A DNA stretch of 64,000 nt from Octopus sinensis (lineage: Eukaryota), in the NCBI RefSeq assembly GCF_006345805.1, contig NC_043014.1, positions 28,086,001 to 28,150,000 of the forward strand, in the 5' to 3' direction. Shown piece after piece: positions 10,760 through 64,000 of this stretch; within the stretch, counting starts at the first letter, position 1, and each line of letters begins with the position of its first letter. A program made the position numbers and the translations under genes. The notes under the pieces are model-generated. The model saw only the letters and a list, made by a program, of their open reading frames with translations, did no database searches and was not told where the DNA came from.

Positions 10760-11150
10760 TGAGTTACTTTAATGCAAGTAACTCAATTATTAAGACAGAA
10801 TTGAAAGGATAATGGAAGCTGGTGCAGAAGAGAGAACTCACCACATTTAAGAAGCATATAATTAACACCATCAAAAGCAGAAGAGGTATATTTGCGCTTA
10901 TTCTTTAGGTGGCATTGCAGCATTTCAGATGTAAATTCTACAGATGTTTTAGAATTTGATACTAGAGACAGTGAAGCAGGTACATTTGGATTTTCAACTG
11001 TAATAACACCAACATAGTATTCAACAATAAGTTCTGCACATTCTTTGGGTTTATCAGTAATCCAATGTTTGTGGGGATTGCAAAGAAGACCTACTGGAGA
11101 GTGAGGTCTTTGCTTTGAATAACAAATATTATCTGATCATAGAGTAAAAT
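10760..11150 (-). mobile_element. Old CR1 fragment related to the intact CR1 at 60313
   Basis: Minus-strand SKQRPHSPVGLLCNPH..ITDKPKECAELI..HLKNKRKY..DGV versus SKQRPHSPVGPLRNPH..ITDDPKECAELI..HLQNKRNY..DGV. Confidence 0.85.
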
Positions 11151-12646
11151 ATAGAAATGTTGACATCAACTTCCCACCAAAAGCTGGTTTTTCCAATGTA
11201 TGTGGGTTTTTAGAAATGCATCAATAAATACGCAGAAATGGTTTATGTGGTGGAAGGAATTGGTAGTAACAACAGGCAGAGCTGTGAGATTGATGAAAAG
11301 TTAACAACAACAAGTAGAAAAACCCAGAATTTGGTGGTTTAATCAATCGGCATGAAATGGAAAAAGAATGGTGATGGTGGTGTTGTGGTGGCGAGGAGGA
11401 ACACCAAATATTGACAAATATAGGTCAAAGTGCATGTGTTTTTCAAACAATTGAAAGATGATAGTTAATGAAAAACAAGATACGTAAAGTACGGAATTTA
11501 GAAAAAAGTTGTGTCTTCTGTGATGGTTGAGCATTAAGAGTTGTTAAGAGGAAAGGTAACTAAGGATTATTTTAATTAAAGGATAATAGAGTATTATTTA
11601 AAGATTAATATATATGCATTTTTTTTTGTTTAAAAGGATAAATGACTTAATAAGAATGTTTTAAAGGATTTTAAGTTGTAATACTATATAAAATGGCTAC
11701 ATTATTTTAATCTCAAATTCATTATGTTTACATTGCAAGGAGATTCATTTAATTTAGAATAAAGAATGGATGATATACAGCTAACTTAAATAGATAATAT
11801 TTTGTATTAATAGTGAAGTTCAGTTTAATATTTTAAATACTAATAGATGAAGAATAGATAGTTATAGTACATTAATTGATGCAGTCATTAAAAAATAACA
11901 GCAAGGCATGTGAGTAACTGAAGAAGATATGCTTAGGTAGATCTTAGTTATTAAAAATGATGTATTTTATTAAAGTGGCCCCTACAAAAAAATTTAAAAA
12001 TTTTAATTTTAAAGCAAACAGTTATTATAATTCAAAAGTGATATGACCATAGAAAGTACCAGGCTTTAGAATTGTATAATAATTCCTTTTAGGAACAGTG
12101 AATCTTAAGGCAAATAAAGCTATAAATAATAGCATGTAAGTATTGGGTTGAATCGAAAAAAAGTTAAAGGCTGCTCACAGGACTCGCACCCACTTCTCTT
12201 GTGTACATGACAGATGTTCTTCCAATGGACCAAAGCAATTCTTCAAATTTCTCTATCCATTTTTAGAAACTTTATTCTTACCAGCAAGAATTGTATGTTG
12301 TTGATGTCATGAGAATCTAGAAACTGAGAACATGAAATAATTCTTTTTATGAACAGTGAATCTTGAAGCAAATAAACCCATCTCTTCCCCACATCTCAAT
12401 GTTGATGAGCTTTTGTTCTTCTGTTCTGTTGGTCTCTTTCCTATGGCTGAGTTGATTCAACCACGAATTTCTTTCTGGTCTTTATAGCATTTTTCAGTCT
12501 TTCTAGAGCAAAGAGCTGAAGCTATATTTTCCATTTTACCATCTTCAATGAGTGCTAATTTTATCTCAGCATTTGTTAACATTAACTGGTTGTCATGAGA
12601 CAATATTACAACAACAACAGCAGCAGCAACAACAGTGATGATAATT

Positions 12647-13224
12647 CTCTGATGTAATTCCAGCACTGGCCTTCATGGCTTCTGATCTCAAATGATTGGA
12701 AGTGTTATCATGTACATGCTTTGTCTTGATGTAAAAGATGGACTACAACAAATATTCTGCTCATTACTATAGATTTGCTTGTCAGCTGTTTGACCTTAAG
12801 CAATTGAGCATGGCCCTTGGTGGCTGATGATATGTGCACCTCTGATCATGAGCAGAAGTAATGGTAGAGCATTATAGCTATGTGTTGAAAGGAATATTGT
12901 GGGGTTTGAATAATTCACCTCTGGAAACATGGGTGTTTCATTCAACATCCTTAAACAGTCCTTATTCAGGGACCTTCTGAGCTGGATGGACAACTCAACC
13001 TGAAGAAAATTCTAACTGGACCTCACCTGTAAGGTCATGTGCTGTTTATCTTGATATGAAATCACCATGTCACACACATATGGTTGTGATGCATGTTCCT
13101 GGTGTACTCTTATCAGATGGGTAGTCATGATGGGTAGTCATGATGGGTAGTCATGATGGGTATATTGGGCTTCATATATTTGTACCCCAGTGTCACTTTG
13201 ATGGCATGTGCTGCTCTCTCACTC
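12647..13224. mobile_element. Non-coding ~580-bp dispersed element associated with AAT-type arrays (copy 1)
   Basis: Clear homology to 22058-22411. Contains GATGGGTAGTCAT three times in tandem (13116-13154) and ends at (AAT)n. Confidence 0.7.
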
Positions 13225-13292
<68 letters not shown>

Positions 13293-13303
13293 TAATAATA
13301 ATA

Positions 13304-13631
13304 TGATAACAAAAGGGGCTGATTGCTACCTAGCTCAGATACCAGGAAACCCCCAAATGGCTGAAACTCAAAAGATAGTGCTCATGGGAACTGCCCATAT
13401 CTTACATAAAATACTGTCTATGTAATCTCAAATTTTAAAACAAATTCACAATTTTCTTATGTTTTCTTAAACATTCTCTAAAACAATACTATGTGCAAAA
13501 CCAAATACATGACACCCTAGGCATAACACCAACATGAACTTCTAACTTGTCTCTTGAGGTCTCTAGGTAAGACTTGGAGCCAACTTGTACAAATACAAAA
13601 CAAAAGTTAAATATACAACAACAACAATAAG
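13304..13631 (+). mobile_element. Extreme 3' fragment of a second Dong/R4-like subfamily after (AAT)n
   Basis: MITKGADCYLAQIPGNPQMAETQKIVLMGTAHILHKILSM* is homologous to the C-terminus of the 8768-9316 ORF, with a different 3' UTR. Confidence 0.75.
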
Positions 13632-14651
13632 CTCTGAGAACTAATTACACTAAATTCCAAATAGATAAGAGCAGTGAATCCTAGCAGATTTTGCACAGAA
13701 CTTGCTCATCAAACATAAGAAAGATCAGCCATGAAAGAAGCTGCAGGAAGACATTCTCTGCTGTTTAGACTGTTTGTCAAGACGTAAAGAGCCATATATA
13801 TTAATTATTTACAGCAACAAGCCATGGCCAAACACCAGAAGCAAAAGAGTAGTCTGGTTTGGAAAGGCGGCATATTTTAGGTTAGTCTGAAGTCTGAAAG
13901 TGGACTTAGCCAGCATAAGAAAACACAAAATCTTAGGATTCTTCTTGCCACAGTATAGAACAATTGTTCTCAACTGGAGTTGATATAAGATTTTTGGAGC
14001 CCACACAAACAAAATAGTATGTTGGGTCCACATTAGTACTTCATGGGTCCATGAAAAAATTTTTTTTAGGGTGTATTTATTGCAAGGTTTCTTTCTCTGA
14101 TGTTTTACATAGTTCAACCTACACAAGTGAATGCTGTGATAAACAAAGTAGGAACTTTGGAAGAAGTATTTATAAAATTAGTTTTTAAACCGTGTATGAC
14201 TATGTGGGTCCCCCAGAATAAAATAACAATCAAAGGAGTCCATAGGTAAAAGAATGGTTGAGAGCTCATGGTCTAGAGAATCATTGTACAATTCACCTAC
14301 AAAGGAAAGATCTATTTATTTTCTGAGATGTGTGTGTATGTGTATGTGTGTGTGTGTGTCTGGTCAAAATGTACCCATGTGCTTTAAATAGATATTGTTT
14401 CTTTTCTCTTGCTTATTTCTTACTCTTTGGTAAGGGGTTAACCCTAAACATTAGTATACTTCTTTTCCTTTTCCTTCTTTTATTTTTCCAATGTATAATT
14501 TACTGTGCACAACTTTTTATGGGATTATTTTTGGCATATACATTTTGTTCATCACCTTTCGATTTTTGTCTACTTGTTGCAATCTCTTATGGTGTTCAAC
14601 TATCCATCTTTTATTCCCTTTTGTTCTATTTGTAATATTTTACCTATATAT

Positions 14652-60222: not shown

Positions 60223-60263
<41 letters not shown>

Positions 60264-60312
60264 TGTGTACAGTGCTCAGGTGCACTACAACTCATCTAAA
60301 GTGTATATATAA

Positions 60313-63134
60313 TCAGGTGAAGTTTCGGCGGATTTCGGAAAGCATGAGGGCCTTAAAAGATGCAGTGTCATGGCAGTCAACAACTGACGCAGGCAGTTTA
60401 TTCCATGCTTCAGCAACTCTGAGCGTGAAAAAATGTTTCCGAAAGTCATGGGAGCTGTATTGTTTTCTGACTTTGTAGGCATGTCCACGTGTGTTAGACA
60501 CATGGAGATCAAAAAGGTGTTCAGTGTTGTTGTTGGTGAGGTGGTTGATAACTTTGTGGGTGTTTACCAAGTCCGTCGCCAAACGCCGGAGCTTCAGTGA
60601 ATCCATGCCCAGGGAAACAAGGCGCTCAGAATATGGTAGGTGTCTGATGGAGGGTATGCGTTTGGTTGCACGTCTCTGGACAGATTCCAGGAGGTCAATG
60701 TTCTGTGCAAGATAGGGGTTCCAAACTGATGATGCGAATTCCAAGTGTGGTCGTACCATAGCTGTATACAGTTTTAAATAGATGGCTGGAGAGCGGCTAA
60801 CAAAAGACCTGCTGAGTGATGCCAAGACACCCTCGGCCTTCCTGACAATCTTAGAGATATGCTTTGACCAACGCAAATCACTGCTGACAGTGATGCCTAG
60901 GTCACGCTCGCAAGAGGATTTCTTGATATCAGTGTTGTGGAGGGAGTATGTGAACGCAGGGTTTTTTCTCCCAAAATGCATGGTGGTACACTTGTCCACA
61001 GCCAGTTTCAGTTGCCAGTCTGTGATCCATTGCTGCATTGTGTCTAGGTCTGATTGCAGGAAAGAGTTGTAGACATCAGGATCTGTCCTCTTGATTTCAA
61101 GGTACAGCTTGATGTCGTCTGCATATTTCAATACTGTGGCATTCTTTAAATTGGCATCTATGTCGTTAATGTATGCCACAAACAAGAGGGGGCCAAGGAC
61201 AGATCCCTGTGGTACACCCGATGACATCTCATATGGTGTAGAGTGCTGTCCTAGAACTGTGACTACCTCCTTTCGGCTGAGGATGAAGGATTTCAACCAG
61301 TTAAAAAGGTCATCCCCCACACCCATTGCAGAGAGTTTCACCATAAGCCTTTTGTGTGGCACAGAGTTGAAAGCCTTAGCAAAGTCAAGGTAGACAACAT
61401 CCACCCATGAGCCACTGTCAGTAATCTGAGTAATGTCCTCAAGGAACTCGACAAGCTGGTCACTGCAGCTGGAGTTAGGGACAAATCCATATTGTGAGGG
61501 TCGGATGAGACTGTGAGAGCTCCAGAAGTTCCAGAGTGTTTCTCTGACACACGATTCCATCAGTTTTGCAATACAGCTAGTGAGACTGACTGGGCGATAG
61601 TTGACAGGTGATGTGCGGTCGCCCTTTTTGAACAGAGGAATGACACTGGCAGTTTTCCACTGCTCCGGAGTAGCACCATTGTTGAGACAGTACTGGAAGA
61701 AAATAGAAAGCTGGTGTAAAAGGAAGTGCCTGCCACGTTTGAGAAGCAGGTGTGTAACTCCATCGAGACCAGGGGAGGCATAGTTGCGCTTATTTTGAAG
61801 GTGACGTCGCAGCATTGCAGGTGTAAATTCCATAGTTGTTATGGAGTTTGCTGTTAGTGATGGTGAAGATGGTACATTTTGACTTTCAACAGTGAATATG
61901 TTTGCATAGCACTCGGCAATGAGTTCTGCGCATTCCTTGGGGTCGTCAGTGATCTGGTTTGTGTGAGGGTTGCGAAGAGGGCCCACTGGAGAGTGAGGTC
62001 TCTGCTTTGAGTGCACATATTTCCAGAAAACCTTGCTGTCAGGATTGGCTGCTATGCACTGTTCAAATTCAAGCACTGCTTTTTTTGTCACTTGCTTGAG
62101 ATGGTTGGAGGATTTATTCCGCTTCTTCCTGTTGGTGTCTGATTTATGCAACCTGTATTCCCGTTCAGCAGTCCGACGTTCCCTCCTGGCAAGTCGGACC
62201 GCTGAAGTTTCCCAAATTGCCCTTTTGGGGCGGTTCTTCTTTTTTTGTTTACGTGGCACTGATGCTGCACATGCTGCCCATATTGAGTCCAGGATACTCT
62301 GGAGTATAGTATTCACATCTCCAGAGTTGTAGAATTCACGCCAGTTTGGGTGCTGTAGTTCAGTGTGGTACAGGTTCCAATCTGCTCTCTTCCAATCGAA
62401 GGAAGCAGATTGGAGATGGTTCAGGTTTTTGTTGCCCGCAAGAGCCAGATTGGCGATGATCATAGCATGATCAGAGTCACCTAGAGGTTCCTCCGTAGTG
62501 CAATTGATAACCGCTTCAGGAGTTGTGAAGAGCAGGTCCAAGGTGTTGTCGCCTCTTGTTGGAGAGGTGACTACTTGTGACCAGTTTGAGTCCAGCACAA
62601 GCTCAACAAAATCGTTTGCACTCTGTGGCCATTGGAAGGTCTCCCAATTGATCTCAGGATGATTGAAATCGCCTGCAATAAACACATAAGTGGCTGTTTT
62701 CCTGGCAGCAGCTCGGAGGACATTGCAAAGCTGTGTGTCCCGATGGTAACTTGGGGGACGATAAACAACGCCAAGCAGGAGTGTTGACATGGTCATACGC
62801 ACGTCACAGAAAAAAACTTCTTCTTGTGATTCGTTCAAATCGGCACAAGGAATTACCAAAAAATTTGAACGAACGTAGACCATCACACCACCACCACGGC
62901 GGTTAGTGCGGTCCTTACGGAAGAGGTTGTACCCCGTAATGTTGAAAACCCCATCACAGAGTAAGGAATGCGCCCATGTTTCCGTGACAGTGATGAAGTC
63001 AGGGTCAACACTTCTGACGTAGGCGTTGAACAAATGTATTTTGTTGCATAAACTGCGAGCATTTAAGGACAACAATTTGTACCCTGCTCGCAGTTTATGA
63101 TGGTGTGTAGAGGATGGCAGGTTGTTCTGGCTTA
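60313..63134 (-). CDS. CR1 ORF2: APE endonuclease plus RT (at least 920 aa, no AUG at start)
   Basis: NARSL, VTETW, YRPP, GDFN, SDH endonuclease motifs; YLDFAKAF, PQGSVLGP, YADD RT motifs; CR1-type C-terminus LESVQRRATK. The frame stays open upstream into the ORF1 end. Confidence 0.93.
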
Positions 63135-63896
63135 GTTTCCCTGAGTTGCTGTAGTCTTTTTAGTTATTGTGGGTAGAGAGCACTCAGACCAGCTGGTATC
63201 TCTCTTCCACGTTTCAGCAGTCTTGACAAATCTCCAGATTTGTCCATCTTCCCGAAGACTGAAGCTTTCCTGTAGAGCTGAGTTCCTATTCAGGGAAGCC
63301 ACTACATGTAGCTTCGGACGTACATTGGACGGTAAGCCTGGGCGTGTTCGGAAGGTGGTCCGATTTTCCCGCCCAGCTTTAACTGAGGCCAGATGGTAAG
63401 AGGTTGCCTCAGTGGGGTCCGTAAAAGACAACTTGATGAGCCTAGGTTTTGGGCCAGGTCGTCCAAGGCGGATAGCACCCGTTGGGGGAACGCAGCCTAG
63501 GTCTTTGGCTGAGTTGGCAGCAAAAGCCTGAAGATCAGCCATGTCTTCTGGCACCCCAATGGCAATGACTTCATGGGTGGCAGAATCCGCGGTCTTAAAT
63601 GCGACAAGAGGTACAGGTACAGGGAGGTTCTTTAGCAGAGCATTCCGATAAGACCCCTCATTGTGGAGTCCAACCTGAATGGTTGCTTTTATTCCTGCTA
63701 CTTCCCCTTTTAAAGCACAGATCGATTGTTGCAGTTCTGCAAGAACCGCACTGGTCAATTGGTGTTGTTGTTGTTGCTGCTGTTGCTCTGGTTGTGGTTG
63801 ATTTTGTTGTTGCTGTTGTTGTTGTTGATGTTGTTGTTGCTGCTGCTCTGGTTGTGGTTGATTTTGTTGTTGCTGCTGCTCTGGTTGTGGTTGATT

Positions 63897-63931
<35 letters not shown>

Positions 63932-64000
63932 CTGGTTGTGGTTGATTTTGTTGTTGCTGCTGTTGCTGTTCCGCCTCCTCCACGGGAGTGGCAGGGGGAG
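63132..64000 (-). CDS. CR1 ORF1 (partial; polyQ/QNQPQPE repeats, coiled-coil-like and RRM-like parts)
   Basis: 283-aa open frame that continues to the window edge. Heptad-like LAELQQSICALKGEV and RLGRPGPKPRLIKLSF, typical of LINE ORF1. Confidence 0.8.

Follow-up and report, generated by a model that had tools for sequence, protein, structure and literature searches.

The stretch of Octopus sinensis DNA that was analysed, referred to here as the window, is 64,000 nt long (NCBI RefSeq assembly GCF_006345805.1, contig NC_043014.1, positions 28,086,001 to 28,150,000 of the forward strand). The minus strand of its last part carries an apparently intact two-ORF LINE of the APE type, belonging to the CR1/L2 group, whose 5' end is cut off by the window edge. 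The 5' UTR and about 35 or more initial codons of ORF1 fall outside the window; in relative L001, from O. vulgaris, ORF1 starts about 100 nt 5' of the position that matches the window end. The following features were located.

60225-64000, minus strand: visible part of the LINE element, delimited by its ORFs and tail, with the 5' end beyond the window edge
63132-64000, minus strand: partial ORF1 including its TAA stop, 288 codons without a stop, open from the window edge
63759-63970, minus strand: Gln-rich tandem repeats within ORF1, with periods of 33 nt and 51 nt (Tandem Repeats Finder)
63135-63141, minus strand: slippery heptamer G_GGA_AAC in X_XXY_YYZ phase, the proposed -1 shift site, found in 11/11 copies
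63132-63134, minus strand: ORF1 stop TAA directly 3' of the heptamer, fixed in place and variable in identity among relatives
63132-63159, minus strand: overlap of the ORF1 and ORF2 frames, the -1 frame being open from 63159, after a TAA at 63162-63160
63067-63134, minus strand: linker from the shift site to the endonuclease, open in the -1 frame alone, without ATG and weakly conserved
60313-63159, minus strand: unbroken ORF2 reading frame, 948 codons plus a TGA at 60315-60313
62455-63069, minus strand: APE-type endonuclease of ORF2 (Pfam PF03372 and PF14529, residues 31-235 of the 948-aa frame)
60946-61623, minus strand: reverse transcriptase of ORF2 (Pfam PF00078, residues 513-738, E 5e-37)
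63047-63099, minus strand: perfect 14-bp hairpin covering the linker end and the NARSL codons, supported by folding and a shuffle test, present in lineage A only and of unknown role
60264-60312, minus strand: 3' UTR of 49 nt
60225-60263, minus strand: (ATT)13 microsatellite tail (AAT on the plus strand), the 3' end of the element

The data showed this anatomy directly. Pfam matches in ORF2 were strong for both enzymes (Exo_endo_phos, E 4e-12; RVT_1, E 5e-37). The copy number of the Gln-rich repeat in L001 differs from that in the window copy.

The junction between the two ORFs was then examined. The last ORF1 codons of the window copy are CAG GGA AAC, followed by TAA at 63134-63132, and the heptamer at 63141-63135 is in the correct phase and adjoins this stop. 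The -1 frame becomes open 6 codons before the heptamer and stays free of stops for 942 codons from it, a span that takes in the APE and RT domains. The first in-frame ATG of ORF2 is codon 86 counted from the heptamer and lies inside the endonuclease, after the NARSL and TETW motifs. These points, namely the end of ORF1, the heptamer, its phase, the opening of the -1 frame and the late ATG, had all been described in an earlier note made from sequence alone, and all of them held on rechecking. About 0.5% of the codons in these elements are the site of an in-phase X_XXY_YYZ heptamer (Y = A or T), and the last two sense codons of ORF1 carry one in 11/11 copies of the family; the placement of the heptamer is therefore more than chance. 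No ATG was found at the ORF1 stop in any of the 11 copies, so SART1-type stop-start coupling is not met, and neither frame of the element contains an NPG or NPGP motif, as 2A-like StopGo recoding would require.

The product of ORF1 is predicted by modelling to be an RNA-binding protein resembling L1 ORF1p, with a coiled coil, an RRM and a CTD. The AlphaFold model contains a helix (63773-63666), a beta-alpha-beta-beta-alpha-beta unit (63572-63339) and further strands (63269-63201), giving the order Gln-rich repeats, coiled coil, RRM-like domain, small C-terminal domain and disordered tail. The top four Foldseek matches of this model were all the human LINE-1 ORF1p trimer. Pfam gave no match to the ORF1 family and a profile search of the PDB returned only coiled-coil noise, so its identity came from the fold search. 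The tail (63185-63135) had a pLDDT below 50, and its 17 residues, the last of ORF1, are thus predicted to be disordered, which is what a linker should show. In the full-length relative P0016, ORF1 has a Cys/His-rich N-terminus that Pfam did not recognize.

The element had been called CR1, and this label held only to the level of the CR1/L2 group; CR1 and L2 could not be told apart. An ORF2 with the APE endonuclease at its N-terminus and the RT in the middle (PF03372, PF14529, PF00078) is common to all APE-type clades, and the sole named match of ORF2 was a bird protein with 28% identity. The short UTR and the (ATT)13 tail in place of poly(A) agree with CR1; microsatellite 3' tails also occur in L2 and other clades. 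The ORF1 architecture of coiled coil, RRM and CTD is found alike in CR1 subgroup 5 and L2 subgroup 6 (PMC4120745).

Eleven copies of the junction were compared: the window copy, three from O. vulgaris (L001, L010 and L011) and seven from metagenome contigs (L002 and L004-L009). They fall into five lineages (A to E), in which ORF1 is between 87% and about 40% identical to that of the window copy. Because the host organisms of the metagenome and MAG contigs are not known, only sequence divergence speaks for the independence of the lineages. All eleven copies had GGGAAAC in phase, a directly adjoining stop and ORF2 in the -1 frame. The stop itself was TAA in five copies, TAG in three and TGA in three, and the codon that it forms in the -1 frame is correspondingly CTA or CTG; no start-like codon is conserved there. 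In the 150-nt junction alignment the sole run of invariant columns was GGGAAACT. None of the eleven copies had a single fused ORF, and three of them (window, L004 and L005) were unbroken throughout their visible part. In relatives the -1 frame opens 2-14 codons upstream of the heptamer.

The data showed that the heptamer and its contact with the stop are conserved at the nucleotide level. As a codon control, 30 invariant residues with degenerate codons were taken from the last ~100 amino acids of ORF1 in one representative of each lineage. A single codon was kept in all five representatives by just two of them (2/30), the terminal Gly (GGA) and the terminal Asn (AAC), while the other 28 residues varied synonymously, including the other invariant Gly and Asn residues. 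Over this end of ORF1 the third base was identical in only 9 of 98 columns. The codon before GGA was CAG, GTG or TTG (Gln, Val or Leu), and its final G was always kept although the residue changes.

It was also shown that the -1 frame alone stays open past the heptamer. Over the 23 codons 3' of it, this frame had no stop in any of the 11 copies, whereas frames 0 and +1 had 1-5 stops each. Amino acid identity of the linker, compared by eye between lineages A and B, was similar in the -1 and 0 frames and did not discriminate between them, which leaves the absence of stops as the usable signal. Four of the five lineages (A, B, D and E) have no in-frame ATG upstream of the endonuclease, and a CTG about 10 codons before NARSL is common to A, B and E. 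In lineage C an ATG lies directly before the endonuclease (LNARSL), 12-23 codons past the heptamer, in a poor context (C at -3, T at +4). An initiation route thus exists in lineage C, and non-AUG initiation or re-initiation cannot be excluded, so the claim that ORF2 is reachable only by frameshifting was too strong.

A Gly-Asn C-terminus was found in 19 of 133 representatives of the ORF1 family (less than 50% identity), against a background of 0.42% (p 2e-23), and one cluster of ORF1 proteins with this ending includes a Capitella teleta protein. The metagenome scan with an ORF1 profile gave a single locus, a near-duplicate of L004. In viral contigs the ORF1 scan gave only a spurious phage contig (L015) and the ORF2 scan nothing, and the ORF1 scan of genome contigs gave no match.

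RNA structure downstream of the heptamer was analyzed by single-sequence and consensus folding, without pseudoknots. No stimulatory stem-loop conserved in the octopus family was found about 5-9 nt 3' of the heptamer. Outside lineage A the MFE z-scores were between -0.8 and +0.6, and the consensus fold of lineages A, B and E (-9.2 kcal/mol) had no compensatory pairs and no covariation. The weak stem CCUGC/GCAGG suggested in the earlier note lies outside the predicted fold; what had been overlooked was the 14-bp hairpin of lineage A at 63099-63047, some 35 nt beyond the heptamer (z = -5.85, reached by 0/200 shuffles). This hairpin has one mismatch in L001 and is not conserved in lineages B and E. 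An Rfam scan of the element detected no frameshift element, only sub-threshold chance matches.

Canonical heptamers were also shown at the same place in other CR1/L2-like LINE families. T_TTA_AAC followed by TAG ends ORF1 in L014, the L017 group and the L053 group; T_TTT_TTA lies 1-2 codons before the stop in L018, L079/L080 and L095; and A_AAA_AAC lies in the ORF1/ORF2 overlap of L016. In L014 and L018 a 9-bp stem lies 4 and 11 nt, respectively, downstream of the heptamer, so that these distant families do show the stem-loop expected of a -1 site. A canonical heptamer was present in the last 12 ORF1 codons of 5/11 families with ORF2 in the -1 frame, compared with 1/13 families with a +1 or in-frame arrangement (binomial p 3.5e-4). 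In the wider survey about half of the -1-class families had no canonical heptamer.

We consider it likely that ORF2 is made as an ORF1-ORF2 fusion through -1 slippage on G_GGA_AAC. This Gag-Pol-style reading, proposed in the earlier note, was supported by comparative evidence only: slippage, its efficiency and the product are inferred, and no product has been shown. None of the conditions that the earlier note had named as refuting it was fulfilled. Ribosomal slippage is indicated because conservation acts on nucleotides and not on amino acids, and because other canonical heptamers occupy the same position elsewhere. On mammalian ribosomes, G_GGA_AAC and U_UUA_AAC rank with the heptamers most prone to shifting (PMC5009743). 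In the proposed mechanism most ribosomes would read ORF1 and terminate at the TAA, while a minority would slip back one base, with Gly-tRNA moving from GGA to GGG and Asn-tRNA from AAC to AAA. The shifted ribosomes would cross the linker, about 24 codons long, enter ORF2 and produce the fusion. By inference, the 0-frame stop that touches the heptamer, and not an RNA structure, may aid the shift by making the ribosome pause. Through the shared coiled coil, the fusion may then enter ORF1p multimers on the RNA that encodes it, set a low ratio of ORF2 to ORF1 and favour action in cis. Against frameshifting stand the lack of direct evidence for a trans-frame product, the lack of a conserved stimulator and the initiation route in lineage C. 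L1 ORF2 is translated without need for its AUG, so a missing ATG is no proof of recoding. A bolder reading, which we regard as no more than possible, is that the heptamer and stop form a self-sufficient, structure-independent -1 module in which the stop acts as the pause, and that this module is the ancestral and widespread means by which, in cephalopods, annelids and other animals, CR1/L2-type LINEs make their RT, as a fusion that co-assembles with ORF1p on the RNA of the element.

The strongest rival is that ORF2 is translated separately, by termination-reinitiation or by non-AUG initiation (from an AUG in lineage C), as proposed for L1 and SART1, with the conserved 8-mer serving as a re-initiation or tethering signal. 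In its favour are the absence of a conserved downstream stimulator in the octopus family, the lineage C ATG just before LNARSL, the CTG shared by lineages A, B and E, and the fact that reviews leave the initiation of LINE ORF2 unresolved (PMC3894237). However, other families substitute different X_XXY_YYZ sequences in the same phase and place, which is not expected of a binding motif; re-initiation does not need a -1 frame that is open from the heptamer, but 11/11 copies have one, lineage C included; and no conserved start-like codon adjoins the stop, the ATG contexts of lineage C being poor. We therefore judge this explanation unlikely. Less likely still is that the ORF1 protein needs a C-terminal Gly-Asn and that, combined with codon preference, this need makes the match to a heptamer coincidental. 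The C-terminus is invariant and is enriched among ORF1-family representatives, and AAC is the preferred Asn codon of the element (69%). However, GGA accounts for just 26% of its Gly codons and NNG for 19% of all its codons, the other 28 invariant residues vary synonymously, the G before GGA is kept despite the change of residue, and disorder is predicted for the last 17 residues. Moreover, ORF1 in other families ends in other dipeptides that again spell canonical heptamers.

Joining of the frames in RNA, by polymerase slippage, editing or splicing, also appears very improbable, and slippage and editing were rejected from the sequence itself. RNA editing is heavy in cephalopods, which is a point for this route. 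However, A-to-I editing leaves the frame unchanged, runs of three G and three A are too short for efficient polymerase slippage, and there are no conserved splice-like signals, since GGGAAACT alone is invariant. Two further candidates were rejected. A copy-specific 1-nt indel in a decayed single-ORF element has nothing for it except that decayed LINE copies are common in general, and it is refuted because heptamer and phase are invariant in 11/11 copies from five diverged lineages, all with the same layout and three of them unbroken. Recoding of the 2A type was ruled out by the absence of its motif.

Under the frameshift reading, the octopus element resembles the Gag-Pol systems of retroviruses, of many LTR retrotransposons and of derivatives domesticated from them, such as PEG10, which likewise have an in-phase X_XXY_YYZ near the end of a structural or RNA-binding ORF, with the enzyme ORF in the -1 frame lacking its own start and a low-ratio N-terminal fusion as the predicted product. 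In contrast to Gag-Pol, it is a non-LTR LINE without a protease, its ORF1 is like L1 ORF1p and not a Gag capsid, its stop always touches the heptamer within the octopus family, and its downstream region showed no conserved pseudoknot or stem-loop. LINE ORF2s are usually described as made by re-initiation or coupling. Frameshifting in LINEs is not unprecedented: in Dictyostelium TRE5-A and TRE3-A, two-ORF APE-type LINEs of the L1 clade, a -1 frameshift is described as required for ORF2 (PMC5911963). Those elements belong to another clade and kingdom, and the source does not mention that a canonical heptamer is kept among diverged lineages or that it touches the stop. Frameshifting for a LINE ORF2 is thus already known in kind, and the layout of the octopus family is a new variant of it.

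Human and mouse LINE-1 and Bombyx SART1 share with the octopus element a bicistronic RNA, abundant ORF1p, scarce ORF2p and a similar ORF1 fold. However, LINE-1, through unconventional termination-reinitiation, and SART1 make a separate ORF2p, whereas the frame of the octopus element is open from the slip site; SART1 needs an overlapping stop and start (UAAUG) (PMC3894237), and the octopus element has no ATG at or near the stop. Another recoding device in the same broad group is the 2A-like StopGo of APE-type non-LTR elements, including CR1 families (PMC3708506), which yields separate products from a single frame, while the octopus element would join two frames. Expression of the Drosophila non-LTR element HeT-A needs a gag frameshift (PMC5009743), but that shift lies within the gag of an element without RT and not at an ORF1/ORF2 junction.

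Current models of ORF2 translation, which the literature treats as an open question in LINEs (PMC3894237), rest almost wholly on L1 and SART1, which produce ORF2p separately from ORF1p. If the frameshift reading is true, a sizeable group of animal LINEs would use the retroviral Gag-Pol solution, the efficiency of frameshifting would fix the ratio of ORF1 to ORF2, and the physical tie between the enzyme and its RNA-binding partner would provide a simple basis for cis preference. These elements would also form a natural set of eukaryotic -1 sites flanked by a 0-frame stop and not by RNA structure. For the annotation of such elements, the first ATG is unsuitable as the start of ORF2, and gene callers now truncate ORF2 or begin it at a TTG.

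On the minus strand of the window, ORF1 was found to end with the sense codons CAG GGA AAC followed by TAA; its start, judged from a relative, lies about 100 nt beyond the window edge. The -1 frame is closed upstream by a TAA at 63162-63160, after which 948 codons are open to a TGA at 60315-60313. The first ATG of the ORF2 frame is codon 86 from the heptamer, 3' of the NARSL and TETW motifs. The following features were identified.

Features of the window LINE
Window edge to TAA at 63134-63132, minus strand: ORF1, partial, without stops, its 5' part cut off by the edge
63141-63135, minus strand: heptamer G GGA AAC, of X_XXY_YYZ form, in the right phase and adjoining the ORF1 stop
Residues 31-235 of the 948-codon frame, minus strand: APE-type endonuclease (Pfam)
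Residues 513-738 of the 948-codon frame, minus strand: reverse transcriptase (Pfam)
Between ORF2 and the tail, minus strand: 3' UTR of 49 nt
60263-60225, minus strand: (ATT)13 tail

Since ORF2 is followed by a UTR and the (ATT)13 tail, the LINE extends from 60225 to past 64000. The earlier note had described, from the sequence alone, the ORF1 end, the phase of the heptamer, the -1 frame and the position of the first ATG, and all these statements held. Within ORF1, Gln-rich tandem repeats of 33 nt and 51 nt were seen at 63759-63970 (minus strand), with a unit number unlike that in the Octopus vulgaris locus L001. Elsewhere in the window, a short piece at 10786-11118 (minus strand) resembled the RT region of a related LINE, with at most 46% identity to the query proteins.

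The junction was compared with ten more, collected by protein searches and contig look-ups from O. vulgaris loci (L001, L010, and L011) and metagenome contigs (L002 and L004 to L009). The eleven copies form five lineages, A to E, with ORF1 identity to the window ranging from 87% to about 40%. The data showed that all eleven carried GGGAAAC in phase, a stop directly 3' of it (TAA in 5, TAG in 3, and TGA in 3), and ORF2 in the -1 frame, which opened 2-14 codons upstream of the heptamer. Over the 23 codons 3' of the heptamer, the -1 frame had no stops, in contrast to 1-5 in each of the 0 and +1 frames. The sole run of invariant columns in the 150-nt alignment of the eleven junctions was GGGAAACT. 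Three copies (window, L004, and L005) were unbroken over their visible extent, and all three had the same junction layout; each decayed copy was interrupted at one or a few points, by stops or frame changes, in ORF1, ORF2, or both. In lineage D (L007 1536-2117, and L008), the family ORF1 was joined to a clearly different endonuclease N-terminus (NIRGL / ILNETF type), which suggests that LINE families have exchanged ORF1 modules and kept the heptamer-stop junction. Downstream of the LINE copy in L001, two neighbouring ORFs of 218 and 362 aa (12589-14402, plus strand) may belong to another retroelement.

We analyzed codon usage over the last approximately 100 ORF1 positions of five lineage representatives. 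Among 30 invariant, codon-degenerate residues, only 2 had a single codon throughout the five representatives: the Gly (GGA) and Asn (AAC) that end ORF1. The other invariant Gly was encoded by GGA/GGG/GGG/GGC/GGG and the other invariant Asn by AAT/AAC/AAT/AAT/AAT, and the third base was identical in only 9 of 98 columns. The codon 5' of the heptamer encoded Gln, Val or Leu, yet its final base was always G. GGA is a minority codon in the window element (26% of Gly codons), and the final 17 residues of ORF1 were predicted by an AlphaFold model to be disordered. Therefore, the constraint is on the RNA sequence, not on the protein.

An exhaustive profile search gave 152 ORF1-family representatives, clustered at under 50% identity. 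In 133 of these the match extended to the C-terminal domain, and 19 of the 133 had a Gly-Asn C-terminus (background 0.42%, p 2e-23); one such cluster contained a Capitella teleta protein. Other representatives ended in GNGQ, GNGH or GNGK. Nine, including P0080, P0083, and P0086, ended in Glu-Asn, which possibly marks a near-canonical variant of the site such as G_GAA_AAC in contig L039.

Junctions of other LINE families were also investigated. 'Prokaryotic' genome bins (GTDB), scanned with an ORF2 profile, gave 456 relatives on contaminating animal contigs, of which 80 were surveyed. The junctions were heterogeneous: of the families whose ORF1 had 100 codons or more, 11 had ORF2 in the -1 frame, 8 in the +1 frame, and 5 in frame with ORF1. 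A canonical in-phase heptamer occurred among the final 12 codons of ORF1 in 5 of the 11 -1-class families (binomial p 3.5e-4 against a 0.5%-per-codon background; one-sided Fisher p 0.048). The +1 and in-frame classes had one family with a heptamer, a frame-shifted copy of a -1 family. The sites, by locus or contig, were as follows.

Heptamers in other LINE families
L014, L017 group, L053 group: T_TTA_AAC, then TAG
L018, L079/L080, L095: T_TTT_TTA, 1 or 2 codons 5' of the stop
L016: A_AAA_AAC within a 52-nt overlap
L039, 1413-1422: near-canonical G_GAA_AAC and TAA, ORF2 in the -1 frame

A 9-bp stem was found 4 nt downstream of the heptamer in L014 (z -3.2), whose element carries an esterase-type ORF1, and 11 nt downstream in L018 (z -2.3); heptamer and stem together form the classical cassette. 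These differing sequences agreed only in X_XXY_YYZ pattern, phase, and place, which points to tRNA slippage and is hard to explain otherwise.

Several side observations were also made. In L012 (548-1304), L013, L033, L035, L037, and L070, ORF2 lay 3' of the ORF1 stop and in frame with ORF1, without an ATG before the endonuclease, a readthrough-like layout that may represent a second recoding type in the group. In L036, of a distant family, ORF1 continued past GGA AAC, and CCATCCTCTACACA, a 14-nt identity, was shared between the window -1-frame linker (63104-63117) and the ORF1 frame (last 15 codons) of L036. The animal-type LINE ORF2s of L016-L095 lay in bacterial or archaeal MAG contigs (for example Metamycoplasmataceae, Sedimenticola, and Thiodiazotropha MAGs), indicating host-DNA contamination of those bins.

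Some evidence spoke against frameshifting. Individual folds and a consensus fold revealed no conserved RNA structure close to the heptamer in the octopus family. In four lineages, shuffled sequences folded as well as the 90 nt 3' of the heptamer; for lineages A, B, and E, the consensus fold was weak, more than 50 nt from the heptamer, and without compensatory changes; and an Rfam scan of the element gave no match. A perfect 14-bp hairpin (63099-63047, minus strand; z = -5.85) pairs the linker end with the ORF2 NARSL codons, but its start lies 35 nt 3' of the heptamer, too distant for a classical stimulator, and is specific to the window's lineage (one mismatch in L001, absent in lineages B and E). 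In addition, lineage C has an ATG immediately 5' of the endonuclease.

We propose that most ribosomes would terminate at the end of ORF1 and that a minority would shift -1 at G_GGA_AAC and enter ORF2, giving the ORF1-ORF2 fusion inferred in the earlier note, for which there are no protein product data. Heptamer and stop adjoin in every copy, which suggests that the stop belongs to the signal. A ribosome awaiting release factor, with Asn tRNA in the P site and Gly tRNA in the E site, might re-pair one base back, which would place CUA or CUG in the A site. The heptamer alone may be enough, since very small amounts of ORF2 protein would suffice for LINEs, and a shared coiled coil would bring the fusion into ORF1p multimers.

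Synthesis of ORF2 by re-initiation or non-AUG initiation is unlikely but cannot be dismissed; it leaves unexplained both the cross-family heptamer pattern and the absence of stops in the frame from the slip site onward. A protein-level requirement for a C-terminal Gly-Asn on ORF1 is very improbable, as the codon control speaks against it. The sequence and the eleven copies speak against the joining of the two frames at the RNA level, which is likewise highly doubtful, and all but rule out a copy-specific indel as the origin of the frame offset.

Frameshifting is not mentioned in the reviews of LINE translation consulted (PMC3894237 and PMC2881922), and in a large recoding review HeT-A gag is the only case cited, with TART and L1 left open (PMC5009743). 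A -1 frameshift is described as required in the Dictyostelium LINEs TRE5-A and TRE3-A (PMC5911963), so the idea is not without precedent in LINEs; elements of the CR1 group are known to use 2A-type recoding (PMC3708506). The literature searched was incomplete; within it, no description turned up of a canonical heptamer conserved at nucleotide level where ORF1 meets ORF2 in metazoan CR1/L2-type LINEs, or of a layout with the heptamer abutting the stop. Older papers could contain mentions of overlapping -1 ORFs in other LINEs.

Pfam gave no match for the window ORF1. The AlphaFold model (five input sequences, mean pLDDT 64) predicted a long helix at the N-terminus, a beta-alpha-beta-beta-alpha-beta unit, and a small beta-rich C-terminal domain. 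In a PDB fold search with the model, the human LINE-1 ORF1p trimer took the top four places (E 2e-4 to 8e-4), and generic RRMs came next. In P0016, a full-length relative of 405 aa, there was an extra Cys/His-rich N-terminal region that Pfam did not recognize. The window element is a CR1/L2-group LINE; its clade is left open, because the same ORF1 architecture is known from one CR1 subgroup and one L2 subgroup (PMC4120745) and classified reference RTs were lacking. The nearest ORF1 relatives in protein searches were O. vulgaris sequences, which identifies the host as an octopus. Several 'hypothetical proteins' of O. vulgaris (P0001 and P0020-P0024) are probably spliced models of LINE ORF1 fragments. 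Residues 210-283 of P0025, an Octopus bimaculoides protein named L-threonine dehydratase TdcB, were 62% identical to the LINE ORF1 RRM region, and its C-terminal part is likely either a chimeric annotation or an exonised piece of a LINE.
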